From contig NIVC01002242.1 of the NCBI GenBank assembly GCA_002269645.1, positions 70,633-134,632 of the forward strand: a stretch of DNA of 64,000 bases, given 5' to 3'. Numbering within the stretch: position 1 is the first letter of the stretch; each line of letters begins with the position of its first letter. Both the position numbers and the translations under genes were made by a program. Origin of the DNA: Macrostomum lignano. Taxonomy: Eukaryota. This document shows, one piece after another, positions 3,393-64,000 of this stretch. The notes beneath the pieces were generated by a model. That model ran no database searches. It had not been told where the DNA came from and worked only from the letters and a program-made list of their open reading frames with translations.

Positions 3393-4817
3393 CATGACCG
3401 TCCCTCATGACCGTCCCTCATGACCGTCCCTCATGACCGTCCCTCATGACCGTCCCTCATGACCGTCCCTCATGACCGTCCCTCATGACCGTCCCTCATG
3501 ACCGTCCCTCATGACCGTCCCTCATGACCGTCCCTCAAGACCGTCCCTCATGACCGTCCCTCATGACCGTCCCTCATGACCGTCCCTCCTGACTGTCCCT
3601 CATGACCGTCCCTCCTGACCGTCCCTCATGACCGTCCCTCATGACCTCATGACCTCCCTCATGACCGTCCCTCATGACCGTTCTCATGACCTCATGACCT
3701 CCCTCATGACCGTCCCTCAAGACCGTCCCTCATGACCGTCCCTCATGACCGTCTCTCATGAACGTCCCTCATGACCGTCCCTCATGACCGTCCCTCATGA
3801 CCTCCCTCAAGACCGTCCCTCATGACCTTCCTCATGACCGTCCCTCATGACCTCCTTCATGACCGTCCCTCCTGACCGTCCCTCATGACCGTCCCTCATG
3901 ACCGTCCCTCATGACCGTCCCTCATGACCTCATGACCTCCCTCAAGACTGTCCCTCATGACCTTCCTCATGACCGTCCCTCATGACCTCATGACTGTCCC
4001 TCATGACCGTCCCTCATGACCGTCCCTCATGACCTCATGACCTCCCTCATGACCGTCCCTCAAGACCGTCCCTCATGACCTTCCTCATGACCGTCCCTCC
4101 TAACTGTCCTTCATGAAGTCCTAATGACCTCCTTCATGACCGTCCCTCCTGACCGTCCCTCATGACCGTCTCTCATGAACGTCCCTCATGACCGTCCCTC
4201 ATGACCGTCCCTCATGACCGTCCCTCATGACCTCCTTCATGACCGTCCCTCATGACCGTCCCTCCTGACCGTCCCTCATGACCTTCCTCATGACCGTCCC
4301 TCATGACCGTCCCTCATGACCGTCCCTCCTAACTGTCCTTCATGAAGTCCTAATGACCTCCTTCATGACCGTCCCTCATGACCGTCCCTCATGACCTTCC
4401 TCATGACCGTCCCTCATGACCTCATGACCTCCCTCATGACCGTCCCTCATGACCGTCCCTCATGACCTCATGACCTCCCTCATGACCGTCCTTCAAGACC
4501 GTCCCTCATGACCTTCCTCATGACCGTCCCTCCTAACTGTCCTTCATGAAGTCCTAATGACCTCCTTCATGACCGTCCCTCCTGACCGTCCCTCATGACC
4601 GTCTCTCATGAACGTCCCTCATGACCGTCCCTCATGACCTTCCTTTATGACCGTCCCTCATGACCTCCTTCATGACCGTCCCTCATGACCGTCCCTCATG
4701 ACCGTCCCTCATGACCTCCCTCAAGACCGTCCCTCATGACCTTCCTCATGACCGTCCCTCCTGACCGTCCCTCATGACCGTCCCTCATGACCGTCCCTCA
4801 TGACCGTCCCTCATGAC
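3393..4817. repeat. 13-bp minisatellite (CATGACCGTCCCT)n, about 1.4 kb
   Basis: Roughly 100 direct tandem copies with variants. Confidence 0.96.
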
Positions 4818-4836
4818 CTCCATTGCAATCTTCTCT

Positions 4837-17520: not shown

Positions 17521-22698
<5,178 letters not shown>

Positions 22699-33732: not shown

Positions 33733-36700
33733 TCACCGCAGCGCCGACTCAGCCAGGTCCTGGGCCACCTGGTTGAACGCCGACGTCAGCTGGCGAACCT
33801 TCGCCTCCAGCCGCTGCTTCTGCGCCTCCGTGTCCTTCAGCAGCTGCCGCATCTCCTCCTCGACTTCGGCAACTCGACTGTCGGCGTCTGACCGCGCCTT
33901 GGCCAGCTGGCGCTCCAGCTGCTCCACCTGGCGCCGGTGCCCCGTCTGCTGGGCGTCCAGCTGAGCCCTGAAGGCGTCGTCAGCTGTCCGCAGCTGCTCG
34001 GTGGCGGCGGTCGCCGCGGCCGCCGATTTGTCCCGTTCGGCGCGCAGTTCAGCCTCGCGTCGTTCGAATTCCGAGCGCAGCTGCTCAACCTGCGCCTCCA
34101 TGCGGCTGATTTGGTCGGATTTGTCCCGCCATCGGCTCGTGAGCTGCGCAGCGTTGCGCTCAGCCCGCTGGCACCGGTCGGTGAGCTCCTCAACCTGCTG
34201 CTTCAGCTCGTCCTTGCGCTCAGTTAGCGCCTTCACCTGGTCCTGTGGTAGGGGCGGAGGCAGGGCTCCCATTATGATTATCCCATTTCTCCCCAATCCC
34301 AATGTAAATTATCCCATTTCTCCCCAATCCCAATGTAAATTATCCCATTTCTTCCCAATCCCAATGTACATAATCTCATTTCTTCCCAATTCAAATGTAC
34401 ATTATCTTATTTCTTGCCTATCCCAATGTACATAATCTCTTTTCTTCCCAATTCCAATGTAAATTATCCCATTTCTTGCCAATCCCAATGTGCATTATCT
34501 CTTTTCTTCCCAATTCGAATGTACATGATCCCATTTCTTGCCAATCCCAATGTACATAATCCCATTTCTCCCCAATTCCAATTTGCATTATCCTATTTCT
34601 TCTCAATCTCAATGTACATTATCGCATTTCTTCCCAATTCAAATGTACATTATCTTATTTCTTGCCAATCCCAATGTACATTATCCCATTTCTTGCCAAT
34701 CCCAATGTGCATTATCTCTTTTCTTCCCAATTCGAATGTACATTATCCCATTTTTTGCCAATCCCAATGTACATTATCCCATTTCTTGCCAATCCCAATA
34801 TACACTATCCCATTTCTTCCCAATCCCAATGTACATTATCCCATTTCTTCCCAATCCCAATGTACACTATCCCCTCTCAAGGCTGCGATCTCTCACCTCG
34901 GCATCCCGCCGGCTCTCAGTCTCCAACTGCAGCTGCTCCTCGAGCTGGCGCGTCCTCTCAATGCCCTCCTCTTGGACCCGTTTCACTGCGGCGTCCTTCT
35001 CAGCTAGGCTGTCCTTCAATTTCCGGACAGTGTCCAGCAGGTCCTCGGCCACTTTAGTCTTGATCCGCAGCGCGTCAGTCTCCTGCTCTAGCTGGCGCTT
35101 CAACGAGGCCACCTCGGACTGGAGCAGCTCCACCCGGCTCTCCAGCCGCCCCCTGTCCTGAGCCAGCGCGCTGCCCTGCTGCGCCAACTCGTCCGCCCAC
35201 AGGCGTTTCTCAGCTCGGAGGCCCTCGATGAGGGAGTCTTGAGCAGCCAGCTGAGCTGTGAGCCGCTTGTTCTCCTTGCGCAGCGACTCCATGTCCGTCA
35301 GGCGGCGCCTGGCATCCTCCAGCTGCTCCTCCTGCTTCTGGTCCCGAGCCTGCCAGGTGCGAGAGTAGAGAGAACTGGGGTGAGATTATTGGGCTAGAAT
35401 GGTGAGATTTAGGGAGTAGATAGTGAAATAGAGATAAAGTAGATGGAGATAGAGAGAGTAGATGGTGAAATGGAGTAGGTAGTAGGACAGAGACATCGGG
35501 AGGGAGAAAAAGAGAGAGAGAGAGTAGACGGTGAAATTGAAGGATAAGATAGTGAGATAGACGGAGTAGATGATGGGGGTAGAATGATTAGACAGTGAGA
35601 AAGAGAGAGTAGACTGTGAGATCAAGAGAATAGACGGTGAGATCAAGAGATTAGACAGTGAGATCAAGAGAATAGACAGTGAGATCAAGAGATTAGACAG
35701 TGAGATCAAGAGAATAGACAGTGAGATCAAGAGATTAGACAGTGAGATCAAGAGATTAGACAGTGAGATCAAGAGAATAGACAGTGAGATCAAGAGATTA
35801 GACAGTGAGATCAAGAGATTAGACAGTGAGATCAAGAGATTAGACAGTGAGATCAAGAGATTAGACAGTGAGATCAAGAGAATAGACAGTGAGATCAAGA
35901 GAGTAGACAGTGAGATTTAGTGAGACTTGAGTAAGAGACGTAACTCAGCAGCAATCTTAACAATCTTCTAAAACACAAAATGAGCCTCGCCTTCTGAGCC
36001 TTGATCTCCTCCTGTCGGGTTTTAGCCGCAGTCTCCAGTTTGATTTTCTGCTCCTTGGCCAGCTGAAATTTGAAGTTAAAAACAATCAGTTTAGGCTAAA
36101 ATCTGAGACACGGAGAAATAATTCAAATGGTAGAGGTGAGCGCACTGGAGACCAAAACAGGATAGCGGAGGGTCGACGGTAAATGGGAGGTTTAAGGATG
36201 AATCACGGGACGCGAACATAGCGTTAAGCAGAGGGCGGTTATTAAGAGTGTGGCCTGGATTCTTCTTCTGGACCTCTCATTTAGCGTCAGGAATTTTAAT
36301 TACGGGTGCCTGACATCAGGTCGATGGCCGACAAATGAGCCACCTGGGCCCGCTTTGAGCTGCGCTGTTCTTGGAGCGGAATCGGATACAGTAGAGACGG
36401 GACCGATGCGCACAGACAGACAGCCAGACACACAGACACTAAGACAGACACTAAGGCAGACAGACAGACAGACAGACACTAAGGCAGACAGACAGACAGA
36501 CACTAAGGCAGACAGACAGACAGACACTAGGGCAGACAGACAGACAGACACTAAGGCAGACAGACAGACAGACACTAGGGCAGACACTAAGGCAGACAGA
36601 CAGACAGACACTAAGGCAGACACTAAGGCAGACAGACAGACAGACACTAAGGCAGAAACTAAGGCAGACAGACAGACAGACACTAAGGCAGACACTAAGG

Positions 36701-36895
36701 CAGACAGACAGACAGACACTAAGGCAGACAGACAGACACTAAGGCAGACGGACAGACACTAAGGCAGACGGACAGACACTAAGGCAGACACTAAGGCAGA
36801 CGGACAGACAGACACTAAGGCAGACAGACAGACAGACACTAAGGCAGACGGACGGACAGACAGACAGACGGACAGACAGACAGACGGACAGACAG

Positions 36896-36933
<38 letters not shown>

Positions 36934-39900
36934 GGACAGACAGACAGACGGACAGACAGACAGTCAGGCAGACAGACAGTCAGGCAGGCAGACAGACAGT
37001 CAGGCAGACAGACAGTCAGGCAGACAGACAGTCAGGCAGGCAGACAGACAGACAGTCAGGCAGACAGACAGTCAGGCAGACAGACAGTCAGGCAGACAGA
37101 CAGTCAGGCAGGCAGGCAGACAGACAGTCAGGCAGACAGACAGTCAGGCAGACAGTCAGGCAGACAGACAGACAGTCAGGCAGACAGACAGGCAGACAGA
37201 CAGACAGTCAGGCAGACAGACAGACAGTCAGGCAGACAGACAGTCAGGCAGACAGACAGTCAGGCAGGCAGACAGACAGACAGTCAGGCAGACAGACAGT
37301 CAGGCAGATAGACAGTCAGGCAGACAGACAGTTAGGCAGACAGACAGTCAGGCAGGCAGACAGACAGTCAGGCAGACAGACAGTCAGGCAGACAGACAGT
37401 CAGGCAGACAGACAGTCAGGCAGACAGACAGGCAGACAGACAGACAGTCAGGCAGACAGACAGACAGTCAGACAGTCAGGCAGACAGACAGACAGTCAGA
37501 CAGACAGACAGTCAGGCAGGCAGACAGACAGACAGTCATGCAGACAGACAGTCAGGCAGACAGACAGTCAGGCAGACAGACAGACAGTCAGACAGACAGG
37601 CAGGCAGTCAGACAGACAGACAGTCAGACAGACAGACAGACAGACAGACAAAACAGACCTGCGACAGCTCAGCCAGCAGCTTCTCCCGCTCGGCCTCGCG
37701 GCCCCTGGCAGCCTGGTACAATTCGCGCAGTCCGGCCGCCTCCTCGGTCGCCTCTGCCGCCTGCCGCTTCAGCTGCTCCTCAGACTGCGCCTGCAGCCGC
37801 AGCGCCAGCCGGAACTCATCCTCCAGCGCGCGGTACCGCTCGCCGGCCTCCGCCAGCCGCTCCTCGAGTCGGCGAATCGCCTGAGCCGCACATCGCCTCT
37901 CCCTGTCAGCCTCCTTAGCAACCAGAGATTCGAGCTCGGGACTGCCCAGCCGGTAGCAGCCGGCCAGCTGGTGCTGGAAGTCCCGCTCCCGTTCCGCTAG
38001 CAGGTGCTCCGCCTGGCGCAGCGACTCCCCTAGGCGCTCCGCTTGGTCGCGCTGCGTCGCCGCTTCCACCTCGGCACGGGCGGCGCGCTTCTCGGCTTCG
38101 GCCGCCGACTGGGCGCGCCGACGCTCCTCACCGCTGGCGGCGCGGCGCAGGCGCTCCAAGCCGGCGCGCATCTCCTCGACGCGGCGCTCGGCCTCAACGC
38201 GCGCCGATTCCGCTGCGGCGCCGTCGGCCTCCGCTTTGGCGGCGCGAGCCTCAGCCGATTCGCGCATCTCGCGCTCGTCTGCCGCGGTCGACTTCAGCTT
38301 CTCGGCTGCGTCGACGGCGGCGGCGCGAACGGCGGCGTCTTCGCGGCTCTGCGCCTGCAGCAGCTGGGCGTGCTCGGCGAGCCGGCGGCAGGCCGCTTCG
38401 CTTTTCCAGCGCCGCTCGCGTTCGAGGTCGAGCTCGCGGAGCAGCTCCTGGGTTGGTGGGAGGCGGGGGTTCGAGCGTAAGGATTTCTCCCTTTTGGGGA
38501 TTCGAGTTTGAGTATTTCTCCTGTTTGGGGAATCGAATTTGAGTATTTCTCCTGTTTGGGGATTCGAGTTTGAGGATTTCTCCTGTTTAGGGATCCGAGT
38601 TTGAGAATTTCTCCTATTTAGGGATTCGAGTTTGAGGATTTTTCCTGTTTGGGGATTCGAGTTTGAGGATTTCTCCTGTTTGGGGATTCGAGTTTGAGGA
38701 TTTCTCCTGTTTGGGGATTCGAGCTCTGGGATTTTTTAGGTTCAAAGATAAAAGAGATTACTAGTGAAAAAATGCGAGGCTGTGGGATTTAGTATGCAGC
38801 TGTGATGATGGGGCAGTTGTGATGCTGGGGCAGTTGTGATGCTGGGGCAGCTGTGATGCTGGGGCAGCTGTGATGCTGGAGCAGTTTTGATGCTGGGGCA
38901 GCTGTGATGCTAGGGCAGTTGTGATGATGGGGCAGCTGTGATGCTGGGGCAGTTGTGATGCTGGGACAATTAACAAATGATAGAAAAGCCATCGGAATAA
39001 CCGGAGGCGATAAGAGCGTGAGCCAGCGGAATCCGGGGGGGGGGCGGCTCAGGTGTGAGTAATTACCGAGCACTCAAAGCCACAGGTGCGCGGGTTGCTA
39101 ACGGAGGCTAATTCCGTCATCCCAGTAAGCCCGTATGCTTCTGTTTGGCCACAAAGGGTCCCTAAAATACACATCGGCTGGGAATTGAATCAGGAAGGGC
39201 GCGGACGAGGATTCGGCTTCTCCCTAAAAATCCCCAATTAATTAACCGAAGCCAGAATTAGAGGGACGCAATTGACGGTTTTTGTCTAATTGGGAAAGAG
39301 CATAGAGTGAGGTCTGCGAATTTATTCGAAGTAGATATGGGGAATAAATTTCATTCTCAGTTAATACGATTAAACTGCAGTCTTGAAAAGGTCCGAAGCT
39401 ACCTGTATTCGGGTGAGAAATTGCGTGATGGGAAGTGATCTCGTTTGGCACGTCTCGGCGTCTCTGCCTTCATGAGTCTACCTCTCTAACTAACCTTCCC
39501 TTGCCTACTTCTCTGACTACTTATTCCTATCAATTTCTCTGACTACCCATTCCAGTCTACTTCTCTGACTACCCCTTCCAGTCTACTTCTCTGACTAGCC
39601 CTTCCAGTCTACTTCTCTGACTAACTCACACTTCCTACTTCTCTGGTTACTTCTACGTGTCTACTTCTCTGACTTACCCCTTGCTATCTACTTCTCTGAA
39701 TAACTCTACCTGTTTACTTCTCGTCCTCTGTCTGTCTACACTTCTCTGACTACTCTTTTCTGCCTACTTCTCTGACTACCTTTCCTTATCTACGGCTCGC
39801 ACTTCCAACTACCTCCCTTGTCTGCTTCTTTGATTAATTCTACTTTTCTATTTCTCTGACTATCTATCAAGACTACCTTTTTGACTACTTCTCCCTATCT

Positions 39901-42900
39901 ACCTCTCCTTACCCACCTCTGTCTACCCTTAATCTATTAAAAGGACAACTGAAGAAATCATTTTTCCGATATCAGGTAACAAATGAGCTTGGAATTGAAG
40001 CAGATATTCTAAAAATATTCTAACAAAAGACCAATCCACGAAACTTTGAAACTTTTGTTCAACTTATCCACTCGAAAATAAAAGGGATAAGCTAAGCAAG
40101 CTGAGTGAGTGGCCCCCTAGTAGCTGAAAGCAACAATCATTGCCCTTGTTCTATAGAATGCGGCACAATAGCCACTGCGCAAGTGAATTCGACACGTCAA
40201 ACAATAGATAATTTACGCTGCCTTTGAACTTTGCAGCCCTATTGAAATCCTGCGCAAAGAAAAAGCCTGCGTCTAAAAATAAAACACAACTGCCATTCTC
40301 TACTGTGTGTAGCATGTGTGTGCCAGTCATTCCTTGTGTCCCACTATCCATGTGTGTGTCTGCCTCTCCATGTCTGTCTGTCTCTCTATGTGTCTGCCTC
40401 TCCGTGTGTGTGTCTGCCTCTCCGTGTGTGTGTCTGCCTCTCCACGTCTGTCTGTCTCTCTATGTGTCTGCCTCTCCGTGTGTGTGTCTGCCTCTCCGTG
40501 TGTGTGTCTGCCTCTCCACGTCTGTCTGTCTCTCTATGTGTCTGCCTCTCCGTGTGTGTGTCTGCCTCTCCGTGTGTGTGTCTGCCTCTCCACGTCTGTC
40601 TGTCTCTCTATGTGTCTGCCTCTCCGTGTGTGTGTCTGCCTCTCCACGTCTGTCTGTCTCTTTATGTGTCTGCCTCTCCGTGTGTGTCCACGTCTGTCTG
40701 TCTCTTAATGTGTCCGCCTCTCCGTGTGTGTCCACGTCTGTCTGTCTCTCCATGTGTCTGCCTCTCCGTGTGTCCACGTCTGTCTGTCTCTCTATGTGTC
40801 TGCCTCTCCGTGTGTGTGTCTGCCTCTCCACGTCTGTCTGTCTCTTTTATGTGTCTGCCTCTCCGTGTGTGTCCACGTCTGTCTGTCTCTCCATGTGTCT
40901 GCCTCTCCGTGTGTGTCCACGTCTGTCTGTCTCTCCATGTGTCTGCCTCTCCGTGTGTGTCCACGTCTGTCTGTCTCTCTATGTGTCTGCCTCTCCGTGT
41001 GTGTGTCTGCCTCTCCACGTCTGTCTGTCTCTTTTATGTGTCTGCCTCTCCGTGTGTGTCCACGTCTGTCTGTCTCTCCATGTGTCTGCCTCTCCGTGTG
41101 TGTCCACGTCTGTCTGTCTCTCCATGTGTCTGCCTCTCCGTGTGTGTCCACGTCTGTCTGTCTCTTCATGTGTCTGCCTCTCCGTGTGTGTCCACGTCTG
41201 TCTGTCTCTCCATGTGTCTGCCTCTCCGTGTGTGTCCACGTCTGTCTGTCTCTCCATGTGTCTGCCTCTCCGTGTGTGTGTCTGCCTCTCCACGTCTGTC
41301 TGTCTCTTTATGTGTCTGCCTCTCCGTGTGTGTCCACGTCTGTCTGTCTGTCTCTCTATGTGTCTGCCTCTCCGTGTGTGTCCACGTCTGTCTGTCTCTC
41401 TATGTGTCTGCCTCTCCGTGTGTCCACGTCTGTCTGTCTCTCTATGTGTCTGCCTCTCCGTGCGTGTGTCTGCCTCTCCACGTCTGTCTGTCTGTCTCTC
41501 TATGTGTCTGCTTCTCCGTGTGTGTCTCCCTCTCCATGTGTGTCTGCCTTTCTATGTGTCTGCCTCTCCATTTGTGTCTTCCTCTCCATGTGTGTCTGTT
41601 TCTCATTGAGTCTGCTCTACTGGGTCTGTCTTAGCTCTAGTAAAATTATAAATTCCAGGTGACAGAAACCGAAAAACGCCCATCAAAAGTACAATAAGCA
41701 CTGTTATTAAGGGCACTCACACCGTAGGTGAGACTTTCGCCTCTCTTTTGAGCAGCAGCCGGTTGGCCTGTCACGGCCAGATTGACAGCTCCGGCCGTTG
41801 CTGACGCTGTGGCGGCTCCGCTACCGCTCGATCCGCCTTTGTCGTCCTTCTTTGTCGCGGAGTCCCCCTGCGGCTGGCGGCTGGAGTGAGTAGTTTAACG
41901 ATTTTTGCTTGACATATGATGCTTAACGTCCTTCAGCTGGCGCCAAATCCTATCCTAATCCCTTCGGTCCTTCAGCTGGCGCCAAATCCTATCCTAATCC
42001 CTTCGGTCCTTCAGCTGGCGCCAAATCCTATCCTAATCCCTTCGGTCCTTCAGCTGGCGCCAAATCCTATCCTAATCCCTTCGGTCCTTCAGGTGGCGCC
42101 AAATACAATCCTAATCTCTCCGGTCCTTCAGATGGCGCCAAATCCTATCCTAATCCCTTCGGTCCTTCAGATGGCGCCAAATCCTATCCTAATCGCTTCG
42201 GTCCTTCAGATGGCGCCAAATCCTATCCTAATCGCTTCGGTCCTTCAGATGGCGCCAAATCCTATCCTAATCGCTTCGGTCCTTCAGATGGCGCCAAATC
42301 CTATCCTAATCGCTTCGGTCCTTCAGATGGCGCCAAATTCTATCCTAATCCCTTCGGTCTTTCAGATGGCGCTAAATCCTAATCCCTTCGGTTCTTCAAA
42401 TGGCGCCAAATCCTATCCTAATTCCTTCAGTCCTTCGGATGGCGCCAAATCATATCATAATCTCAGTCCTTTAGATGGCGCCAAATCCCAAACGACTCGG
42501 CCCTTCAGTGAGTTTCCCAAATTTTTTCTCCGTAAGACATATATAAATGGAATTCTCCCAAGGAATTGGCCGGGCTACTTAATTAGGAGATTAATAATAC
42601 TAGTAGGAAAAAGGAGGAACGAGTGGGAGGTTCCTGTGTTCCTGTTCATGAATTCCGCTAGGACTGCAGCTTTGACCGAAAGCAAAGGAGAATGTCTACA
42701 TTAATAAGTGGGCATTTACACCCATATTAGTAGCAGACTAGCAATCAGCGCCCCCCAACGGGGGGCCAACAAAGAATGGAATAATTTTTTTGAATAAACT
42801 GCATGTAGCTTCTGACCTTAGCCTTGACATAAAAAAATCCCGCCCCCACTAAGCCTTAACATCTCAGCTATTCCTCCTATAAGCCCTGACACCTCAGAAA

Positions 42901-47937: not shown

Positions 47938-49931
47938 GTCTATCTGTGTGTGTGTGTCTACCGTATCTGTGCCTGTCTGCATCTTTGTGTCTGCATATGT
48001 ATCTTGTCTGTGTGTCTTTATCTGTCCATGTGTCTGCATTCCTGCCTGTGTTTGTCTGTCGGCCTGTCACGGTGTCTGCTTGCCCATCTTTCTCCGTTGT
48101 ATCAAGAGAACTCGCACAAGCAGTCAGTTGGTAATTACAAAATGAAAGCCTTGCATTCACACAATAGCTTTTCACAGGTGTCCATTAAAATTCGCCATTT
48201 GAAGAGTTTCGACCGACCTTATCCTTCGCTCTCCTATCCCTGCGCAAGACCGTAGCTATTGTTGCAAGAAAATTTCAAAGAGTAACTTTCGATATCGCAA
48301 AGAGTTGAAAGATTTGGTTTAAAAGTTTAATTATCGGTTTAGTAGGAAAAAATCCCTTTCAGCCGCATCTTAGTTCTTATGGATTGACCTGAACCTTCAA
48401 TGCTCAGAACAGAAATGCTCTTCAGTAAAGTTCATTTCAATAGAAGATCACTCAATAAATTATTTTGAATAAAAGAAAAATCACCAATAGCTAACTGTGT
48501 TTTGAATCCCAATCTAAATATTCCTCTATTGGGGAAATCCCAATCTAAATATTCCTCTATTGGGGAAATCCCAATCTAAATATTCCTCTATTGGGGAAAT
48601 CCCAATCTAAATATTCCTTTATTGGGGAAATCCCAATCTAAATATTCCTCTATTGGGGAAATCCCAATCTAAATATTCCTCTATTGGGGAAATCCCAATC
48701 TAAATATTCCTCTATTGGGGAAATCCCGATCTAAATATTCCTCTATTGGGGAAATCCCAATCTAAATATTCCTCTATTGGGGAAATCCCAATCTAAATAT
48801 TCCTCTATTGGGGAAATCCCAATCTAAATATTCCTCTATTGGGGAAATCCCAATCTAAATAATCATCAATTAGGAAAATCCTAATCTAAATAATCGTCAA
48901 TTGGGGAAATCCCAATCTAAACAATCGTCAATTGGGGAAATCTCAATCTAAATAATACTCAATTGGGGAAATCCTAATCTAAATAATCCTCAATTGGCAA
49001 AATCCCAATCTAAATAATCGCCAATTGGGGAAATCCCAATCTAAATAATCGTCAATTGGGGAAATCCCAATCTAAATAATACTCAATTAGCAAAATCACA
49101 ATCTAAATACCTCGTAATCATCAATGAGAAAAATCCCAATCTAAATAATCGTCAATTGGGGAAATTCCAATCTAAATAATCCTCAATTGGGGAAATCCCA
49201 ATCTAAATAATACTCCATTGGGGAAATCCCAAACTAAATATTCCTTAATTGGGAAAATCCAAATCTAAATAATCGTCAATTGGGGAAATCCCAATCTAAA
49301 TAATCCTCAATTGGAGAAATCCCAATCTAAATAATACTCCATTGGGGAAATCCCAATCTAAATATTCCTTAATTGGGAAAATCCCAATCTAAATAATACT
49401 CCATTAGGGAAATCCAATTAGATTAACCCCCAATTGGGAAATCTCCTAAAGCCCCGCCTCGGGCGCAAGACTCGCCTGATTTCCATGCAGCTCAATGCAG
49501 GTGAGCCGATACGCCGGGCCCCGCATCTCGGCAAAGCCGGCCACGTCTCTGATGGCATTGTAGGACAAGTTGATTCGAACCAACGACTTCAATCCGGCCA
49601 GGCCTTCAACCTTTGCCAGGCGATTGCCAGCCAGATTAAGAGTTCGCAGGCTGGCCAGACAGTCGAGGTCACTAATCCGGCTGATCCTATTAGAGGACAA
49701 ATCCAGGTGGCGCAGGTTGGGGGCGCGGTCCAGGCCGGCCAGGGCCTCGATTCGGTTGCAGTGGCAGTTGAGCACGGACAGCCGATCGTGCAGCGGCAGG
49801 TCCAGCAACCGGCCGACTCCGCAGTCGATGTAGCTCAACTCTGAGGCTTCCGTCGGGTCCGCTTTGAAGCCGCGAGCGCCGCCGGGGCGCTTGACCACCT
49901 CCTGCTGCTGCCGCTTTGACTGCTGGGTCCG
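33733..49931 (-). CDS. LRRCC1: LRRCC1 (CLERC/VFL1) centriolar LRR and coiled-coil protein; exons 49931-49476, 47520-46977, 46169-46109, 41880-41721, 38447-37659, 36062-35991, 35349-34897, 34242-33733; ATG exon lies further upstream and was not fixed
   Basis: N-terminal LRRs ([44 protein letters not shown]), LRR cap [36 protein letters not shown], a long coiled coil and C-terminal EEEMRQLL. Phases are consistent if two donors are GC. Confidence 0.88.
34270..34870. repeat. 31-bp minisatellite filling the last LRRCC1 intron
   Basis: About 19 copies of CCCAATCCCAATGTACATTATCCCATTTCTT. Confidence 0.93.
35600..35918. repeat. 21-bp minisatellite (GACAGTGAGATCAAGAGATTA)
   Basis: About 14 copies. 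Confidence 0.92.
36411..37650. repeat. (GACA)n-derived compound microsatellite
   Basis: GACA/GGCA/GTCA units with CACTAAGG inserts. Confidence 0.95.
38480..38722. repeat. 31-bp minisatellite (TTTGAGGATTTCTCCTGTTTGGGGATTCGAG)
   Basis: About 8 copies next to the acceptor at 38448. Confidence 0.9.
38795..38965. repeat. 17-bp minisatellite (GATGCTGGGGCAGTTGT)
   Basis: About 10 copies. Confidence 0.88.
40340..41600. repeat. TG/TC compound microsatellite-derived array
   Basis: Recurrent GTGTCTGCCTCTCC and CCACGTCTGTCTGTCTCT blocks. Source of the CVCLS ORFs. Confidence 0.94.
41930..42490. repeat. 39-bp minisatellite (CTTCAGCTGGCGCCAAATCCTATCCTAATCCCTTCGGTC)
   Basis: About 11 good copies decaying rightwards. 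Confidence 0.93.
43065..43620. repeat. 23-bp minisatellite (ATGTCTGACATGACGCTTCTTTT)
   Basis: About 24 copies. Confidence 0.94.
44024..45373 (+). CDS. Intronless rhodopsin-family neuropeptide GPCR (FMRFamide-receptor-like) with a polyQ tract in ICL3
   Basis: 449 aa with seven TMs. [38 protein letters not shown] and [10 protein letters not shown] are typical of invertebrate peptide receptors. Confidence 0.92.
46625..46940. repeat. CTAATG/GACTAATG-based short-unit repeat
   Basis: Read directly, next to the donor at 46976. Confidence 0.85.
47560..47940. repeat. (CTGT)n compound microsatellite
   Basis: Read directly. Confidence 0.92.
48530..49420. repeat. 31-bp minisatellite (CCCAATCTAAATATTCCTCTATTGGGGAAAT)
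   Basis: About 28 copies in two variant blocks. Confidence 0.95.
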
Positions 49932-54947: not shown

Positions 54948-55467
54948 TTACGATCGAAAGTCCTCCACGCCCGCCTGGGTCATCAGGTCGGCGACGCTGC
55001 GCTCGAGTTCGTCAATCCGCCGGCCCATTTCGTCGATTCGGCCGGTGATGCGGTCGCTGGTGTGGCCGAAATTGTCGGTCATGCCCTGCAGCATGGCCTG
55101 CAGCTGCAGGTGGCGAGGAGGGTAGCGGATCGGTAAGCATATCCCGGACTACAGATATTAAAAAACCATAGACAGTTCGTTAGTAATACTCGTTTAAGCT
55201 AATCTTAATTTAGTAGCTTGAACGAACAGGCAGATCCACGCAGACTGTCGCTTTAATTTTCGACAGTGCCCAAAAAAGCAAACGCTAAAAACTGTTGGCT
55301 TGAATCCGGTTCTAACATGGTGTTCCTTAAAGCTTTGTGTTTTTGCCAACTTCGGGTTCGTAAAGACGTCCCCAGACCCACAAGCCCCAGCTTACGTGAT
55401 TCGTGAGCTCTTGGACATTGTGCGGATCAACAACTCCATATGATTTATCCTTGGCGAAGTCGGCCAT
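54948..55467 (-). CDS. HSBP1: Heat shock factor binding protein 1; exons 55467-55396 and 55103-54948; 75 aa
   Basis: [58 protein letters not shown] aligns with HSBP1 (DPKTVQDLT...[28 protein letters not shown]). Phase-0 GT-AG intron. Confidence 0.93.
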
Positions 55468-56035
55468 GCTGCAGTAACTGTCTGTCAGCTGCTAGTCAAG
55501 TCTGGAGAGCTTGAAAAGAAAAATTTTAATTTCTCTGCTTTCCTTCCTTTATTTCTAAGCCTCTCTCTGCTGCTGCAGGTAAGCTTTTAGGCAGGGGGGA
55601 GAGGCAGTGAGAAGAGGGAAGCAAGTCAACGGTAGAGAGACGGTTTGCGTTGCCATTGGTTACGACAGGCACAGCTGAGGCAGGGGTAGCGTTCGGGGAC
55701 AGAGAATTCAGAAGAGAGAAAAAGAGACGGAGAGACGGAAGGGTGGAGCAGGGGATGAATCAGCTGCGTGCCTGATGCCCACTGTGCCGTCCCTGCACTC
55801 AGCTAGCAGTGCAACTCTCATGCTTCCACTTTGCTCTCTCCTCTGTCTCTGACTGCTTCTCATATGGCGCCCCGGATCGAGGGCAAACATTGCCAAGTGC
55901 AAATATTCGCAAGACTCTCTACGAGAACCAGCTGGGACAGCGCGACCAATGCTAGCTACTTAATGCGTCCAAATTTTATTGAAAAATGCAAACAAAAACT
56001 TTTAACGCCAATTCTTTGCGCCATTCACTCGAACT

Positions 56036-57144
56036 GACTGACTGACTGACTGACTGACTGACTGACTGACTGACTGACTGACTGACTGACTGACTGACTG
56101 ACTAACTGACTGACTGACTGACTGACTGACTGACTGACTGACTGACTGACTGACTGACTGACTGACTGACTGACTGACTGACTGACTGACTGACTGACTG
56201 ACTGACTGACTGACTGACTGACTGACTGACTGACTGACTGACTGACTGACTGACTGACTGACTGACTGACTGACTGACTGACTGACTGACTGACTGACTG
56301 ACTGACTGACTGACTGACTGACTGACTGACTGACTGACTGACTGACTGACTGACTGACTGACTGACTGACTGACTGACTGACTGACTGACTGACTGACTG
56401 ACTGACTGACTGACTGACTGACTGACTGACTGACTGACTGACTGACTGACTGACTGACTGACTGACTGACTGACTGACTAACTGACTGACTGACTGACTG
56501 ACTGACTGACTGACTGACTGACTGACTGACTGACTGACTGACTGACTGACTGACTGACTGACTGACTGACTGACTGACTGACTGACTGACTGACTGACTG
56601 ACTGACTGACTGACTGACTGACTGACTGACTGACTGACTGACTGACTGACTGACTGACTGACTGACTGACTGACTGACTGACTGACTGACTGACTGACTG
56701 ACTGACTGACTGACTGACTGACTGACTGACTGACTGACTGACTGACTGACTGACTGACTGACTGACTGACTGACTGACTGACTGACTGACTGACTGACTG
56801 ACTGACTGACTGACTGACTGACTGACTGACTGACTGACTGACTGACTGACTGACTGACTGACTGACTGACTGACTGACTGACTGACTGACTGACTGACTG
56901 ACTGACTGACTGACTGACTGACTGACTGACTGACTGACTGACTGACTGACTGACTGACTGACTGACTGACTGACTGACTGACTGACTGACTGACTGACTG
57001 ACTGACTGACTGACTGACTGACTGACTGACTGACTGACTGACTGACTGACTGACTGACTGACTGACTGACTGACTGACTGACTGACTGACTGACTGACTG
57101 ACTGACTGACTGACTGACTGACTGACTGACTGACTGACTGACTG
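56036..57144. repeat. (ACTG)n microsatellite, about 1.1 kb
   Basis: About 277 units with only two visible ACTA variants. Confidence 0.99.
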
Positions 57145-57299: not shown

Positions 57300-60200
57300 T
57301 CATTTGCAGTAGCCGCAAGTCCTGGCGCACAGACTGCGCATTGAGCGGCACATGTTGCTCTTCTTCACGAACAGGCAGTCAACAGGGCGGATTTTGTCTT
57401 TGCATTCTGGAAGACGTGCGGGATTTGTGGGATTTGCCAGAAGGTATTTAGGAAAGATTTAGTTAAGAATGACAGCTAGTGAAAGCTTTGACTCACTCTG
57501 AGTTGAGGCGCACTTCTCGCTGGAGGTGTATCGTTTAGGCACGCAAACGTTCGATCCGGGATACGTGACGTAATACATGAAGCAGCGGATTCGCTTGCCG
57601 CACTTGCACTGAGACACGGTGGACCGATCGCGCGGACATTTCGGCGAGCAAGAGAAAACGGCGAGACTTCGGCGAACAATGCAGTGACCCTTCACACGGA
57701 TTGTGTACAGTGTGACTACCTGCCGGATCCATTTCTTGCCGTGACGATAGCACTTGCTAATCAGCTTTCTGGTGACTAAGCCGCAGTTCTTGCAGCTATA
57801 AGTCTTAGCATGAGAGCTGATGCGACATCGGCCATTGACAAAGCGGGCGACGATCTTTGTAATTTTGCGTTGGCCATTTTTGCACGGTCCGATCAACTGG
57901 TAAGAGCCGACTTGGCAACGGACGCAGCGCAGGTTTTTGATTCTGACAGAGACGCGCCACAGACGTAGTTTTTTATCGTAGTAGACCTGAACTCTAATGT
58001 CCTTCTGCCAGCCGGACTTGGAGCAGCGGCTGCGCCAGTGGTAGCCTCTCGGTTGACGCTTGCAAACACCGCAAGTGTAATTGCACAGATGACGTACGAG
58101 GTGCCTGGAACACTTCGACTTCTTGCAGAATTCTCGTCTGTCCTCGCATTTGCGACATGGCACTCGCAGTTTGTGCACCCGCCTTTGGCAGCTACCGCTG
58201 CGATTCCGCTTCCACGTAGCCACCGCTGCTGTCCTGTAGCATACGCGCTGCTTGCCTAATTTGATGCAGCTGCACTTGTATTGCTTCAGGATGCGGCGGA
58301 AGGGACATTTAGTAGGACAGATTCGCTCAAACAAAATACAGTCTCGCGTCTTGCGCAACTTCAGCGACGGGAACCGCAGGAGGAGACCCCTGCGATTGAT
58401 TCGCAGAAGGAGACACTTTCGCGTTGAATGATCATAGTCGAATGCCCGGCATTTGCTGTTTTTCTGACAGCTGCTCATGCAAACGTCGAAAGAGGTGCGC
58501 TGAGCCAAAATGAACGAGCGTCGGAAGTGCCGCTGCTTGCTGAGGCAGAAATTTTTGGCATAAATGAGCCGCGTTTTGGGGCAGCCTGTGGGAGAATTGG
58601 TTTTGAATCACAGTTGAAAATATCAATATTCGTGTTCTATAAAGCAAAGTTAGTGCTTACCATAGCAACGATGGCAGGTCCTCGCGCAAAGACGCTTGGC
58701 GAAATACGGGTATTTGTCGCACAATTGAATCTTGTTAGAAGCGGCCCACTTTCTGCATATTCCAGTGGGTAGCAGGTCTCTACACTTGGACTTGCATTGC
58801 ACCACGCGTCTGTAGATCTTCGATACGCATTTACATTTTACAGGCTTGTGAATGACAACAATAACTGCTTGAGTCTTGCCTGTACATTTTGATACCTTTG
58901 TGCGCGCCTTTGGACAACTTATAAGTCTGTAGCTTGTAAACTTTCGAAGCTTGCAACTGTTACCACTTACAAAGAAGCGATACTCAGTTACCACTAAGCG
59001 GTTGTTTCTAAGGCAACTGTAGCGTTTGTATGGCTTCTGACAGGCGCACAGCTTCAAGAAAGAATTGGAAACGGTTTTGCAGCTGCAACCGACGCGTCGC
59101 TTCCATGTCTGCACGACTCGCGCGTACTTTTTATTTCCCTTAACGATATTACAAGGACCAACTACACTATGGCGCTTGGAGCTGCACGTCACACGAATTC
59201 TTGAGGTGATCTTGCTGCGTGCAATGCACTTATTTCCAGACTTCTGCCAATAATGGTGAATGTAAACCCACGAGCCGGAGCGGCACTTCTTGGTTGCGTA
59301 ACCGCGCCTACATCTGCAAAGCTCATAGCGCGACTTTGTGTACTTGATGCAGACACAATTTCTCTTCTTCCAATAGCACTCGACCCACTTTCGATAGAAT
59401 CCATTCTGTCTGGCAGCACATTTGGATTTTTTCGTTCGAGGTGAAGGACAGCGGACTGGTCGGTAAATTTTGCGAGACACGCGGCGACAACTGCGTTTGT
59501 GGAATTCAAGCCAAGAATGGACTTCAACATGCTGCTGCGAACGTTTGTCGCAGTAGCGGTATTTCTGAAGTTGCCGCTTGCAACCTGAAATAACATAACA
59601 CTTAGGGTTTGTAACTGTTTGATTGAGTAGAAAATTAACTACATTGGTAGAAAATTGAACTTACAGCAAGTTTCCTTCCACACTTTATAATGACGCTTGC
59701 ATTTGCAGTTTCGCACAGTGTACCATATGCTTCCCATACTTCTCTTGCAGCTCGAACGATTGCATTTACCCCTGACTATTTTTCGAGTCTTGCACGTTAC
59801 GCGAGAAGTGCGGCATCTGCGGTTTTTGGTGCACCCAGTCGGTTTGAGAGTGTAAGTATAGTGGCAGCGCTGCTGGTGATTTCCCCGAACGCAGGTGTTG
59901 ACAACGTGCTGCTTAGGACAACGGCAGCGTATGAGCTGGTGTCGGCGGCCAACCTTACAGCGGCACTGTGCAACATGCCGAGTTACTATCGTGTCTTTCC
60001 TCCAGCCATCTTTGCGACACGGTCCTCGGTGAAGCTTGGAGCGTGGCCGACAGGCTGCATGCACTTGAGCGGAAATGTCATACCGGCGCACGCTTCGATG
60101 ACAGGCGTGCTTCTTGAATCGGTATGAGGTGACAACTCGGTACAGTCTGTTTTTGTAACACTTCTTTTCAACGCTGTCTCTGTGAATGCAGCAGCACAGC

Positions 60201-63200
60201 TTCCACCAGCTTTTGGATCTGCGCACGCATTTCTTTCTACGCCGATCCAAATAGAATGTGGTGCGTGTATACACTCTCCTGCAGTTGTGTTTGTGACAAG
60301 CGGAATGCTTAACGACCGGCTTGGCACAAGCTTTCTTGCAGATTCTCTCAAACAGGCGCGTGGCGGAGAAGTGATACCTACAGAATGTATGAGTTGAAGC
60401 ATCTTAACATTGAAACAAGTGTCATAAACTTAATTCAAATACAGAAAATTTGCATCAAAAAGAAATGGTTAACCTACTTGCGGCGAATTCCAAGTTCCAT
60501 GTAATGCATTTTGATTGGTTTTGAAGCCAGCCACTTGACGTATAGACCGGATTTGGGAATCGGACGGAAGCCAACAACGAAAACGCTGGCTTTGCGCTTA
60601 ATCTTGTCGGCCAGTGCGACTGTCTTGTGCTGCTTGCTATGTTTGCCGCAGGTAATGATTACTACAATCTTTTCTACACCCGGTCGGGACTTAGCGTGTA
60701 GACGCCTATTGACTTCCTTAAGAGCCCCGCACAAATCGGTTCTTGTGTTGGTAAATGCCTTGATAGGTAGATTTTTCAAATGCTTCAATTTGTGAACGTG
60801 TACATTCCAGTTGTAGGAAACCATAGTAATGTGAACACTTGCAGAGGTGTGCAAAAAGTAGGTGGAAACGGTCTTTAGGAAGCTGACTATTCGTTTCTTG
60901 TAGCCACGCCTGTCTTTTCCGTACAGGTCAACTACCAAGAAAAGATCGACAGCTTTGTGGGCACAAGCGCACTTTCGGAATTCAGAGCGGACACGGCGCA
61001 CACAACGGCAGCCAATCTTTACCCAGTAGTGCACGATGTACCGTTGTTTTCCTCCTTTGCACCTTCCCTGGATAGCCCTGAGCACGCGGCGTGTGCAGTT
61101 CACACGCCTGAAAGAGTCCTTTGTTTTTGAGTAACAGCGACCATTTCTTAGCGTGTGAGTAATCCGTCTGATTCGTATCGCACCGCGAATACAAACTCGG
61201 GTCGTTGTTGCCTTGTTGCAACAGCATTTGCTCTTCTTCACTTGCTTCTTCATAATGCACTTACACTTGCGAACGCTGTATTGCTTGATTATTACTGTGC
61301 GATTACAGCGCTTGCAATTTCGTTGTATGGTCGATTTAGGACATGACACACGCTTTCTAGAGACAGTTCTATAGCTGACGCAACGACATCCAACCAAACG
61401 CCAACAGTTTCGAATGGCCGCAACTTGATTGCCATTTTCGCACCTGTATGACAAAGTGCACCGACGACAATCAGAGTAGCACAGCACTCGTTTGGTTTGC
61501 CGTATGCATTTGCATCCAGATCGGACAAAGCGCTTGTATACCTTATAGTATTTTGGTTTTCCTGCTGTACTGTGTGACAGCCGCCAAGTTGTGTCGCATC
61601 GAACCGCCTGTGATTGACGCTTAACGTCCCGCACACAGCGACCACGACTTAATCGGTAAGAATAATGGAATGTAACTATATGTCCCCGGTGGCAGATCTT
61701 CTTTTTGTGTGGCTTCAAACAGCGGCAGACAACCGAACGAGTTTGAACTCTTTTATGACAGCGACATGCCTTTTGATACCAGGAGACGGTTGTCTCAACC
61801 AAATAAAATCCGTACTTCGTTGGTTTACTGCAGCAACTACGAGTCATTTTTTTCGGTTTGCAAAGGATCGGTTTATCCACGCGACGTGTCTGCTTGAGGC
61901 ATCTACCATTCGATAGTCTCCACACGGTGATGTAGCGCTCCTTACGACAACGGCCACGAGAACACTTGCAAAGAACTCTTTGCACTGGCTTCTTGCATTC
62001 TGTAATGTTAATGTTAGAAAAAAACGATGTTCATTCGCTACCTTGCCTGAGCGGAAGAAAAATGAAAATAAAATTTTAAACGGGACTCACTGTATCTCAA
62101 GAACACAGTTTTGCAGCTTTTCACGCACTTGCAATTCTGCCGCTTAACCGAGCAACGGGTAACCTTCAGCACACCGCCAGGAAGCTTTTGTTTGGAAACC
62201 GTATTATGACGCTTGCACTCTGAAAATATCATGAAACATTTTATATTGCATGTCAAATACTTAAGGTAACATTTCCAGTATTAAGAGCTAAAAACAACAG
62301 CACATACTAATTTTCCTGCTGCTCTTAGTAACCTTCTTGATACACTTCCACTGTTTGAGAACTCGCTTGGTGATAGTTGTGATGACGTACCCTCGTTTGC
62401 GGTCGCATTTAACTGTGCGTCTGTAACCCTTGCAGCAACACACGCGATGCCGATGGTAACTCTTCCAAATGCATTTTTCGCCACTGAGAACCTGTTTCTT
62501 AAAAAGCAGCCTCTGGCGACACGATTTCTTGTTGCACGGTGCAGTCGAAACTAGTTTGCTACCGTGATGACAACCTGAAAGTATTTTGTTTGAGTGTGCA
62601 TTGTTACTTAAAAATAAGATACGTTTGACGCCATGATTTGCACGAACTAAGCTAAAAATTTAAACGCAATACTTACCACAACGGCGTATGTGCCGCGTTA
62701 CTTTTTTAAGCATCTGCAGTGCTTAACGTATGGCCTCGTCACAAAAACGTTAAGCTGTCCAGACTTCTTGTTGCAAACCTTTTTCACTTTCACCTGACCA
62801 CAGCTCAAGCGTTGGCGTCGCTTGCCAACGAGAATTCGTCGACAACGACCACGTACCAGTCGTCGTTCAGTGATTTTCGTGACCTTTATATAGCCAGCCA
62901 GACAGCTGTTCTTAACTTGACGACGCTTGTCACAGCCGCAGAGTTGATGAGTAACTTTGCGAACGCTTCGGCATTTGCAGTTCCGGACTGTCCATTGAAT
63001 GTGCGTCAGCTTGCGGTACTTGTCTCCATTACGTCCTCTCCTGCACGGACCACGAGTTTTAGTAGACTTTCTTACAGCGCACAGCTTTGCGGGAAACTTT
63101 GCTATCTTTATAGCACGCACAGTTACGAAGCTTAGATGCTGTTTTCACTGTGACGCAAAATGCGACCATTTTTACAGAAGCGTCGATCAGGTATCTTTCG

Positions 63201-64000
63201 GCAGTGAAGCGGCAGCTGCGTCGGGTCACACGCTTACGACAGAGGCAGTTATTGAGGCTGATTTCGGTCGTTTCAATGTGCTTGACCCCTTTGAAGTTGC
63301 ACCGCGATTGTTTTACATATCGACCAACTTTGCACGGCACCTTTCTTTTGTGAGTACGTTTTACAAGCTTGCAGTGGGCCTTCAGCTTCTTGCCAACAAG
63401 AAGCCACTTCTTTGTAACTGTCACAACTTCATTGGATATGCACTTCTTTGTGACGACCGTTTTGCGGCACCTGAATTGGTGAATTCGGTAATTAAGCAAC
63501 TAGAAAAATAAAACTATGACAGCCACTCATATCAAGATACATTTTCTAATGTTTTTCTTACCTGCATGGAACAGTCACGCGCTTCACGAGTACCCAAATA
63601 CATTGGCATTTTTTCGCCCGCCGCTGGTACAAATAATAGATGCGGAAACCTTTCCGACTGCAATTTCCGGGCACAATCTTCGCGCCCTTGCAGCGCACAA
63701 GTCGCACCGATTTATGAGACATCTTTTTGCAACCGTAGTCCTTGGGCACGGCCACCACTCTGTGTAAGTCACCACTTTGTTATTGCCCACGCATTTAACC
63801 AGCTTTTTCGACCATGCCTCTTAGCGCAGTCACATATACGCGTGGTGTTTTCGAGTCACATAGAGGCACTTTGCAGTTCTTAGCATAGACGTAGATTTTC
63901 TTAATAACTTGAACGTATTTATTTCGACTACTGCAGGCACGAGGCATTACCTGTGTGCGAACCCATCGAAGTTTTGTAGAACACGGTAGTCGATTATTGC
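57300..64000 (-). CDS. 3' part of a giant Lys/Arg/Cys-rich modular protein with degenerate vWA, PAN/apple and 3 ShKT domains; exons >64000-63562, about 63499-62677, 62574-62308, 62219-62091, 61999-60478, 60377-59665, 59584-58661, 58585-57497, 57406-57300
   Basis: Seven downstream exons join through phase-consistent GT-AG introns of about 75-100 bp. ShKT: CRDLLPTGICRKWA...CARTCHRC, CEDRREFCKKSKC...CNYTCGVC, CKDKIRPVDC...CARTCGYC. PAN: CMSSCQKNSKCRAFDYDHSTRKCLL. vWA: VDLFLVVD...KIVVIITCG...VFVVGF. Frameshifts occur above 62690. Confidence 0.85.

Follow-up and report, generated by a model that had tools for sequence, protein, structure and literature searches.

Giant secreted mosaics of small Cys-rich modules are a well-known kind of protein, exemplified by mucins, von Willebrand factor (vWF), SCO-spondin and fibrillin. 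In the flatworm Macrostomum lignano, two giant, secreted and Cys-rich proteins are involved in adhesion. Mlig-ap1, which is strongly Lys- and Arg-rich (K/R-rich), combines Cys-poor KR low-complexity regions with C-lectin, vWD, C8, TIL and 17 EGF domains [PMC6410801, Wunderer et al. 2019], and Mlig-ap2 carries vWD, TIL, LDL and TSP1 domains together with 46 repeats of 221/255 amino acids (aa); neither has significant homology to known proteins in NCBI nr [PMC6410801]. Here, we discuss a gene of the same species, located on the minus strand at positions 57300-64000 of a stretch of 64,000 nucleotides (nt) that constitutes the final 64 kb of contig NIVC01002242.1 (GCA_002269645.1) and is referred to below as the window. 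The product (the window protein) is a very basic protein, most of which consists of a repeated, predicted hairpin module, with VWA, PAN and ShKT domains interspersed. Like Mlig-ap1 and Mlig-ap2, it is giant, Cys-rich and, almost certainly, secreted, and a polycation-polyanion mechanism is plausible for both it and Mlig-ap1. However, the two adhesion proteins have no hairpin module and no VWA, PAN or ShKT domain, whereas the window protein has all four. Moreover, none of the domains of Mlig-ap1 and Mlig-ap2, C-lectin, EGF and TSP1 included, is detected by Pfam in the 1,920 aa available, and identity with either protein was rejected on this ground. The architectures of Theama ap1-3 likewise differ from that of the window protein [PMC9229212].

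The gel-forming mucins, vWF and SCO-spondin resemble the window protein in that they, too, are secreted, very long and composed of small Cys-rich modules. In M. lignano paralogues, the hairpin module is adjoined by VWD and CTCK, through which mucins and vWF polymerise. The available 1,920 aa of the window protein differ from these systems in that Pfam detects no VWD, C8, TIL, CTCK, TSR or LDLa module and no Pro/Thr/Ser-rich (PTS) mucin region was found, in that the C-terminus is formed by an ShKT domain and not by CTCK, and in that the repeat module is a different, uncatalogued one. A classical mucin was rejected, since PTS, VWD and CTCK are missing from the available part and it has six N-glycosylation sequons only.

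We regard it as probable, if far from certain, that this gene is the M. lignano member of a giant secreted hairpin-repeat family and that its product acts as a polycationic scaffold of an extracellular or granule matrix. As judged from the sequence, the window protein is almost certainly extracellular and structural, because PAN, ShKT and VWA domains are combined with ~4 predicted disulfides per 88 aa and because full-length relatives carry signal sequences. These features support the secreted structural role put forward in an earlier reading of this DNA (the original prediction). Probably, we are dealing with a structural matrix protein that is phylum-wide and not with the worm's glue.

The repeat unit and its predicted fold

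The Cys-to-Cys gaps along the protein are periodic and define a unit of ~88 aa with eight conserved Cys, C-x8-C-x18-C-x12-C-x10-C-x17-CxC-x10-CxC. A hidden Markov model (HMM) built from five seed units detected eight further units at an independent E-value (iE) <0.01, and the iterated HMM detected 14 full units (44-67 bits) and three partial ones, which cover 72% of the protein; the maximum score in 30 shuffles of the same protein was 3.5 bits. Each unit has two halves of ~43 aa, A with three Cys and B with five, between which there is a weak relationship (hhalign P 2.5e-4). Hence, the array is ultimately built from a module of ~43 aa, of which the conceptual protein contains ~35, while none was found elsewhere in the window. 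Inside the gene, self-BLASTN gave 0 high-scoring segment pairs and Tandem Repeats Finder (TRF) reported no tandem array, and unit-to-unit identity at the amino acid level is 21.5%, or 14% without the shared Cys. The absence of DNA self-similarity together with this low identity points to an ancient protein repeat. A DNA satellite was rejected on the BLASTN and TRF results, and a chance open reading frame (ORF) was considered and rejected as well. The original prediction had described dozens of Cys-patterned modules with the motif K-C..V-I-T-x-Y..C-K-C..C-x-C, had taken them for an old protein repeat and not a satellite, and could not assign them to a named family. All of these points hold, and the motif is real and corresponds to the B half of the unit.

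It had also been proposed that the modules be modelled and that a module HMM be compared with Pfam and with other proteomes. With AlphaFold2, a single unit (alignment of 11 window units only) is predicted with a mean predicted local distance difference test score (pLDDT) of 95.1 and a predicted template modelling (TM) score (pTM) of 0.66, and two tandem units (four alignment rows) with a pLDDT of 91.6 and a pTM of 0.51. Both models are all-beta, and each half-module consists of a lead strand followed by a hairpin with strands of 12-14 residues. Despite these confident models, Foldseek gave no significant match in the PDB (best E 0.9 for the single and 0.18 for the tandem unit, TM<=0.3), a profile search of all PDB sequences with the module yielded 0 matches at E<=10, and a comparison with Pfam at E<=10 returned unrelated single-member noise only. 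The module thus appears to be undescribed. Its size (~40-55 aa per half), antiparallel three-strand layout, end Cys and tandem extracellular arrays we take to be like those of the TSP type-1 repeat (TSR), fibronectin type I (FN1) and the N-terminal subdomain of VWC, a likeness that serves as a lead only. The Cys pattern differs from that of all three, the WxxW, CSxTCG and CxxCxC signatures are absent, and neither the Pfam nor the PDB searches connect the module to them.

Across the family described below, the eight Cys columns are conserved at 79-99% in 678 module instances. Among 479 near-full-length family modules, the loss of Cys is correlated between C4 and C7 (phi 0.49), C5 and C8 (0.33) and C3 and C6 (0.28). 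From this pattern, we infer disulfides C3-C6, C4-C7 and C5-C8 and, by elimination, C1-C2, i.e., four per unit. The secondary structure, combined with a low pTM at high pLDDT, suggests a rod-like arrangement, in which tandem hairpin units may make up a rod that is long, stiff and resistant to proteases.

The flatworm family and its basic Macrostomum members

An exhaustive search of 1.84 billion representative proteins with the module profile identified 81 proteins at E<=1e-3, of which 44 reach E<=1e-10 and 12 reach E<=1e-30; a single protein has up to 45 matched stretches. (A word-based homology search with the module alignment gave no match, its word index being too insensitive.) Every named match belongs to the Platyhelminthes, unnamed matches from Logan, JGI and MetaClust not being counted, and carries no annotation beyond 'hypothetical' or a domain name. 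The members include cestodes [Echinococcus granulosus W6UV63 / EUB62272.1, 5,275 aa, and Sparganum], trematodes [Echinostoma, Paragonimus A0A8S9Z4W8, 4,817 aa, Dicrocoelium, Opisthorchis, Trichobilharzia and Heterobilharzia], monogeneans [Cichlidogyrus and Protopolystoma] and several M. lignano paralogues. W6UV63 was named automatically 'collagen alpha-3(VI) chain', a label that is due to its VWA domain. The family sequences are already public as unnamed predictions, and a literature search by accession [W6UV63, EUB62272, XP_024353468, KAF8567424 and OON22972] found no study, nor did one by SRA run. That this module is the main building block of a giant family, flatworm-restricted among the named matches, also appears to be undescribed.

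In alignments, the window protein is colinear with two relatives, namely with Echinococcus W6UV63 over the final ~2,000 aa of the latter (21% identity) and with a 3,733-aa M. lignano paralogue at the C-terminus of that protein (P0083; 27% identity). The Echinococcus and Paragonimus proteins have the ~88-aa, 8-Cys unit in 36-46 copies by the unit HMM, and share with the window protein a C-terminal cassette that consists of VWA, ~7 modules, ShKT, a gap (filled by PAN in the window protein), ShKT, one or two modules and a terminal ShKT. The order of this cassette is the same, and its spacing similar, in the window model and in P0002 and P0100. In Macrostomum, Echinococcus and Paragonimus, respectively, VWA and ShKT1 are separated by 662, 676 and 791 aa, ShKT1 and ShKT2 by 177, 243 and 241 aa, and ShKT2 and ShKT3 by 232, 249 and 251 aa. 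Full-length family members have roughly 3.7-5.3 thousand aa (kaa), and given the colinear C-termini and the shared cassette spacing, the complete M. lignano protein probably has ~3.7-5 kaa. Signal-peptide-like hydrophobic N-termini are present in six relatives (P0002, P0006, P0010, P0020, P0071 and P0085). Three M. lignano paralogues (P0085, P0090 and P0071) combine the hairpin module with VWD (E 1e-26), CTCK (per UniRef name) and two VWA_4 domains, which suggests a lineage-specific expansion of polymer-forming relatives.

Some individual members deserve mention. A Logan contig of 12,864 nt (SRR8820788; L001) has a single 12.5-kb ORF of 4,171 aa with short flanks resembling untranslated regions; the protein has a signal-peptide-like N-terminus, 27.6% K+R, 35 hairpin units and three ShKT motifs, and the contig is probably the mRNA of a full-length basic family member. 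Two other Logan contigs (L003 and L004) likewise carry full-length basic homologues. Residues 1-49 of an N-terminally truncated MetaClust protein (UPI000865A87B; P0016) contain five HRRYYSNYY repeats ahead of 14 hairpin units; this basic sequence is similar to motifs rich in Tyr that occur in structural proteins of the tanned or DOPA type. The Sparganum proliferum protein BHF74423.1 (P0007) ends with a Methyltransf_16 (lysine methyltransferase) domain at residues 3555-3689 (E 2.5e-13), probably as a result of a gene-model fusion with a neighbouring gene.

With respect to charge, the Macrostomum protein stands apart from its parasite orthologues. It contains 13.6% K and 13.6% R (27% K+R), 9.5% C (183 Cys) and 3.1% D+E, with an isoelectric point of ~10.6 and a net charge of +463 for the conceptual protein. 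The charge is spread over its whole length, being about +24 per 100 aa overall and +16 to +26 in individual regions, among them the VWA, PAN and ShKT domains. In contrast, the Echinococcus and Paragonimus proteins are charge-balanced, parasite members having ~15% K+R and ~11% D+E. The extreme basicity (K+R >=25%, D+E <=8%) is limited to a subset of the family formed by the window gene, other M. lignano members and some transcriptome-derived members. Neither this limitation nor the phylum-wide family nor the frame breaks in the 5' 1.3 kb of the gene (see below) had been recognised in the original prediction.

Three of the named domains score above the Pfam gathering thresholds: VWA (PF00092; 30.4 bits, E 5.6e-7, profile positions 16-146 of 174, threshold 23.8), PAN_1 (PF00024; 34.5 bits, E 1.8e-8, positions 19-76 of 76, threshold 21.4) and the C-terminal ShK (PF01549; 24.1 bits, E 5.6e-5, positions 1-37 of 37, threshold 20.9). 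Two internal ShKT candidates stay below 20.9, at 9.7 and 13.6 bits. We accept them because they align over the whole 37-position profile, carry the six-Cys signature C..C..C..C-x3-C-x2-C, and have counterparts in ShKT-pattern motifs at the same relative positions of the Echinococcus and Paragonimus orthologues. The K/R/C-rich, D/E-poor composition and the set of one VWA, one PAN and three ShKT domains had been read from the DNA in the original prediction, and both stand, the internal ShKT pair as candidates below the Pfam threshold that are backed by signature and orthologue position.

The VWA of the window protein is shorter than that of the orthologues. Metal-dependent ligand binding by VWA requires a metal ion-dependent adhesion site (MIDAS), DxSxS ... 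T ... D. In the window protein this site is lost (D-L-Y-G-K and ..ITCG), while the Echinococcus, Paragonimus and Sparganum orthologues keep it (D-E-S-V-S and ..SDG/TDG). That the Macrostomum members have turned into polycations, with MIDAS loss in the window protein, likewise appears to be undescribed.

Gene model and genomic surroundings

Ten Cys- and K/R-rich ORF blocks extend across 57300-63779, and a weaker coding signal continues as far as 64000. Reading-frame and splice-site analysis joins the blocks into ~5.8 kb of coding sequence with at least 1,920 codons in ten exons, the conceptual product having 1,920 aa and the stop codon lying at 57300-57302. The introns are 50-100 nt long and of the GT..AG type, with GTAAGT/GTGAGT-type donors and YAG acceptors, and six of the nine provisional introns lie at, or a few residues from, a unit or domain boundary. 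Since position 64000 is the contig end and the gene runs off it, neither the window nor the assembly contig contains the N-terminus. This agrees with the ~6 kb and ~2000 aa, with the N-terminus outside the window, that had been estimated before. The features are as follows, all on the minus strand.

63562..63779, minus, exon with unit 1; covered by gene model P0031; coding very probably extends into 63780-64000
63471..63561, minus, intron of 91 nt, GTAAGA..TTCAG; junction PCR/CRKT matched by P0031
62702..63470, minus, probably a single exon with a 1-nt frame break at 63064-63071, according to repeat-HMM scores
62575..62701, minus, ambiguous junction with two readings, both scoring 91.4 bits
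62308..62574, minus, exon with degenerate units (gene model and unit HMM)
62220..62307, minus, intron of 88 nt, GTATGT..TTTCAG (splice-site analysis)
62091..62219, minus, exon with a half unit (gene model)
62000..62090, minus, intron of 91 nt, GTGAGT..TTACAG; junction RY/KCKK in gene model P0001
60478..61999, minus, large exon with four full units (61988-60963), then VWA (gene model and unit HMM)
60365..60962, minus, VWA, split by the intron 60378-60477 (Pfam, 30.4 bits against a cut-off of 23.8)
60378..60477, minus, intron of 100 nt, GTAGGT..CTGTAG; junction RRK/YHFS in P0001
58788..60364, minus, middle module array of one half and five full units, aa 982-1480 (unit HMM)
59585..59664, minus, intron of 80 nt inside the middle array, GTAAGT..TTTCAG; junction TCC/CKRQ in P0001
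58665..58796, minus, ShKT 1, C-x8-C-x11-C-x10-C-x3-C-x2-C; below the Pfam cut-off, position conserved in orthologues
58586..58660, minus, intron of 75 nt, GTAAGC..CCACAG; junction CYG/CPKT in P0001
58317..58505, minus, PAN/Apple (PF00024, 34.5 bits, E 1.8e-8)
58062..58190, minus, ShKT 2 region with the six-Cys core CEDRREFCKKSKCSRHLVRHLCNYTCGVC; 13.6 bits, below the Pfam cut-off
57642..57905, minus, last full hairpin unit, aa 1750-1837 (unit HMM)
57407..57496, minus, intron of 90 nt, GTGAGT..TTCCAG (splice-site analysis)
57306..57404, minus, C-terminal ShKT 3, then Lys and stop (PF01549, 24.1 bits against a cut-off of 20.9)

The closest database match of the whole protein is UniRef A0A1I8HV10, an automated M. 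lignano 'VWFA domain-containing protein' with 97% identity. The whole-protein homology search gave no close match besides the gene's own database model, and a contig search with P0001 as query gave no match. Five splice junctions are reproduced independently by the database gene models P0001 and P0031, the latter being identical (100%) to the conceptual protein across aa 11-160. The NCBI annotation cuts the locus into two products of 150 aa and 1,595 aa.

Approximately 150 nt downstream of the stop codon, at 56033-57144, lies a near-perfect (ACTG)x278 microsatellite, which yields spurious 'SVSQ' ORFs of 230-380 aa in each of the three frames of the minus strand. The gene called next in the downstream direction, at 54948-55467 on the minus strand (L002 8534-9053), has a 75-aa product with a precomputed Pfam match to HSBP1, heat-shock factor binding protein 1. 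Positions 1-56000 of the window are dense in mini- and microsatellite arrays (49 TRF rows, units of 4-146 nt, <=116 copies), e.g., at 3370-4818, 20815-22635, 26936-27817, 36412-37650, 40347-41598 and 48505-49443. Strong base skews (AT skew +0.50 at 36-38 kb and -0.48 at 40-42 kb) and low-GC stretches (31-35%) at 12-14 kb and 50-54 kb were also seen.

Mode and site of action

On the reading we favour, the window protein would be secreted, as its relatives and domain content indicate. Some 40 or more disulfide-locked hairpin units would give a long, stiff, protease-resistant rod, and the C-terminal cassette would probably provide protein-protein or protein-glycan docking for assembly or anchoring. 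The whole M. lignano protein, named domains included, has turned into a polycation, and its VWA has lost the metal-ion site. The resulting scaffold might then be held in the extracellular or secretory-granule matrix by multivalent electrostatic binding of polyanions together with disulfide chemistry, the partners being sulfated or acidic glycans and negatively charged surfaces. Because the MIDAS is lost, the action would be electrostatic and would not involve metal-dependent ligand binding by VWA.

Several points weigh against the polycationic scaffold. The binding of polyanions is deduced from charge alone, and the rod geometry and Cys pairing are deduced from secondary structure, pTM and co-loss statistics. 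The N-terminus of the window gene is beyond the contig end, so that signal sequences are seen in relatives only, where they were judged by hydrophobicity. The iterated HMM was trained on units that it scores; the seed-only round and the search of 1.84 billion proteins are independent of this training. Furthermore, the supporting proteins are all automated gene models, and the 5'-most 1.3 kb have at least three frame breaks, which are compatible with a decaying copy.

As to where such a scaffold would act, the sequences leave two sites that are compatible with the evidence, each of them doubtful when taken as the sole answer. ShKT and PAN domains are common in secreted, mucus-associated proteins. 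This content would suit a granule matrix of the epidermis or glands (rhabdites, mucus, cement or shell glands), in which rods might be condensed with acidic glycans and swell or cross-link on release. The pairing of the module with VWD and CTCK in M. lignano paralogues, the uniform polycationic character, which suits co-packaging with polyanions, and the Tyr-rich N-terminal HRRYYSNYY repeat of one family member are in keeping with this site. Against it stand the absence of VWD, CTCK and a PTS region from the available part, with its few N-glycosylation sequons, and the fact that Neodermatans have no rhabdites yet keep the orthologue, which is charge-balanced there.

Alternatively, and just as tentatively, the protein may be a scaffold of the flatworm extracellular matrix (ECM) or basement membrane, an analogue of collagen VI, hemicentin or fibrillin, with the basic charge in Macrostomum as a secondary adaptation. 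The architecture is conserved across the phylum in full-length members of 3.7-5.3 kaa, parasite orthologues keep a MIDAS-competent VWA, and the Echinococcus protein bears the name 'collagen alpha-3(VI)'; this name, however, is an automatic, VWA-based label only. It is also odd for a core ECM protein that no Schistosoma orthologue was retrieved via the Heterobilharzia americana homologue (P0063), though orthologues of other schistosomatids and trematodes were and Schistosoma proteomes should be present in the databases; lineage loss or an annotation gap may be the reason. In addition, a literature search on the planarian matrisome, at the level of a list of candidate papers, established no link to the hairpin-repeat family, and no planarian sequence was identified. 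Nor did a literature search on rhabdites give a link to the family.

That the copy is a decaying pseudogene, making no functional protein, we regard as unlikely. M. lignano has many recent duplicates, and introns do not suffice to explain the 5'-most 1.3 kb of the gene, where the frame is disrupted at least three times within 62700-63760. At the A-rich run 63064-63071, correcting the frame by 1 nt brings back a repeat unit that is nearly complete (137.9 bits in total); an intron-only reading with a 52-nt intron at 63024-63075 was rejected, as it deletes a conserved Cys and scores 113.3 bits, 24 less. At ~63747-63752, a unit that is only partial as it stands (50.4 bits) becomes complete (58.6 bits) when the frame is changed by 1 nt. 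Near 62700, either a 50-nt intron at 62652-62701 (GTAACG..TTTTAG) is used, or one A is missing from an A6 run at ~62700-62705 and is followed by an intron at 62575-62676 (GTAAGT..TTTCAG); the second reading gives a perfect CxC-x10-CxC unit end, and the two tie at 91.4 bits. Further frame changes accompany the weak coding signal at 63780-64000, and the NCBI split falls about at the break points. However, the other 5.4 kb are clean, with uninterrupted exons of 1.5, 1.1, 0.9 and 0.7 kb and all conserved Cys and splice sites intact, and models from a second assembly (P0001 and P0008) differ by only a few residues. Because all breaks lie within 1.3 kb of the end of a long-read contig and two are in A-rich runs, the pattern expected of consensus errors, long-read consensus indels are the more likely cause, with gene-copy decay as the alternative.

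Lastly, a duo-gland temporary adhesive, i.e., a polycationic cohesive or surface-binding glue of the tail-plate adhesive glands released by polyanion like Mlig-ap1, is unlikely. In its favour, the window protein shares its great size and its high content of K, R and Cys with the M. lignano adhesion proteins; in that system, positive charge plays a central functional role, and K/R-rich proteins are poorly detected by tryptic mass spectrometry [PMC6410801]. Against it, the architecture of the window protein is unlike those of Mlig-ap1, Mlig-ap2 and Theama ap1-3, its charge resides on folded Cys modules and not on Cys-poor low-complexity KR regions as in Mlig-ap1, two proteins are reported to account for the footprint and the RNA interference (RNAi) phenotype [PMC6410801, PMC9229212], and colinear orthologues occur in cestodes, trematodes and monogeneans, all of which are without duo-gland organs. 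The link to flatworm temporary adhesion drawn in the original prediction is consequently not borne out.

Returning to the matrix scaffold, we also entertain, with less confidence, a broader version of it. The unit may be a double beta-hairpin locked by disulfides, with a new fold that, to the extent of present sampling, arose within flatworms, and it would build a phylum-specific class of giant extracellular rods. The Macrostomum orthologue and paralogues would have been made polycations throughout, giving up the VWA metal site, for charge-driven condensation with acidic glycans. If so, M. lignano would have a second structural polycation system, independent of Mlig-ap1 adhesion, and in the parasites the conserved secreted orthologue of 4-5 kaa would represent a major component, so far unstudied, of matrix or secretion.

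For annotation, the name 'collagen alpha-3(VI)' is misleading for the Echinococcus protein, and the current assembly presents the M. lignano locus in a split and truncated form. As a biomaterial, a polycationic rod that is locked by disulfides and carries a net charge of about +24 per 100 residues would be an unusual natural design, comparable with the K/R-rich flatworm adhesives. An uncatalogued domain makes up the bulk of a secreted family of 2-5 kaa, no member of which has a known function, and this family includes medically important cestodes and trematodes [Echinococcus, Paragonimus, Opisthorchis, and bird and mammal schistosomatids]. For flatworm biology, the family would represent a major unstudied structural component of the extracellular or secretory compartment, and M. 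lignano, with in situ hybridisation, RNAi and transgenesis, offers the means to study it.

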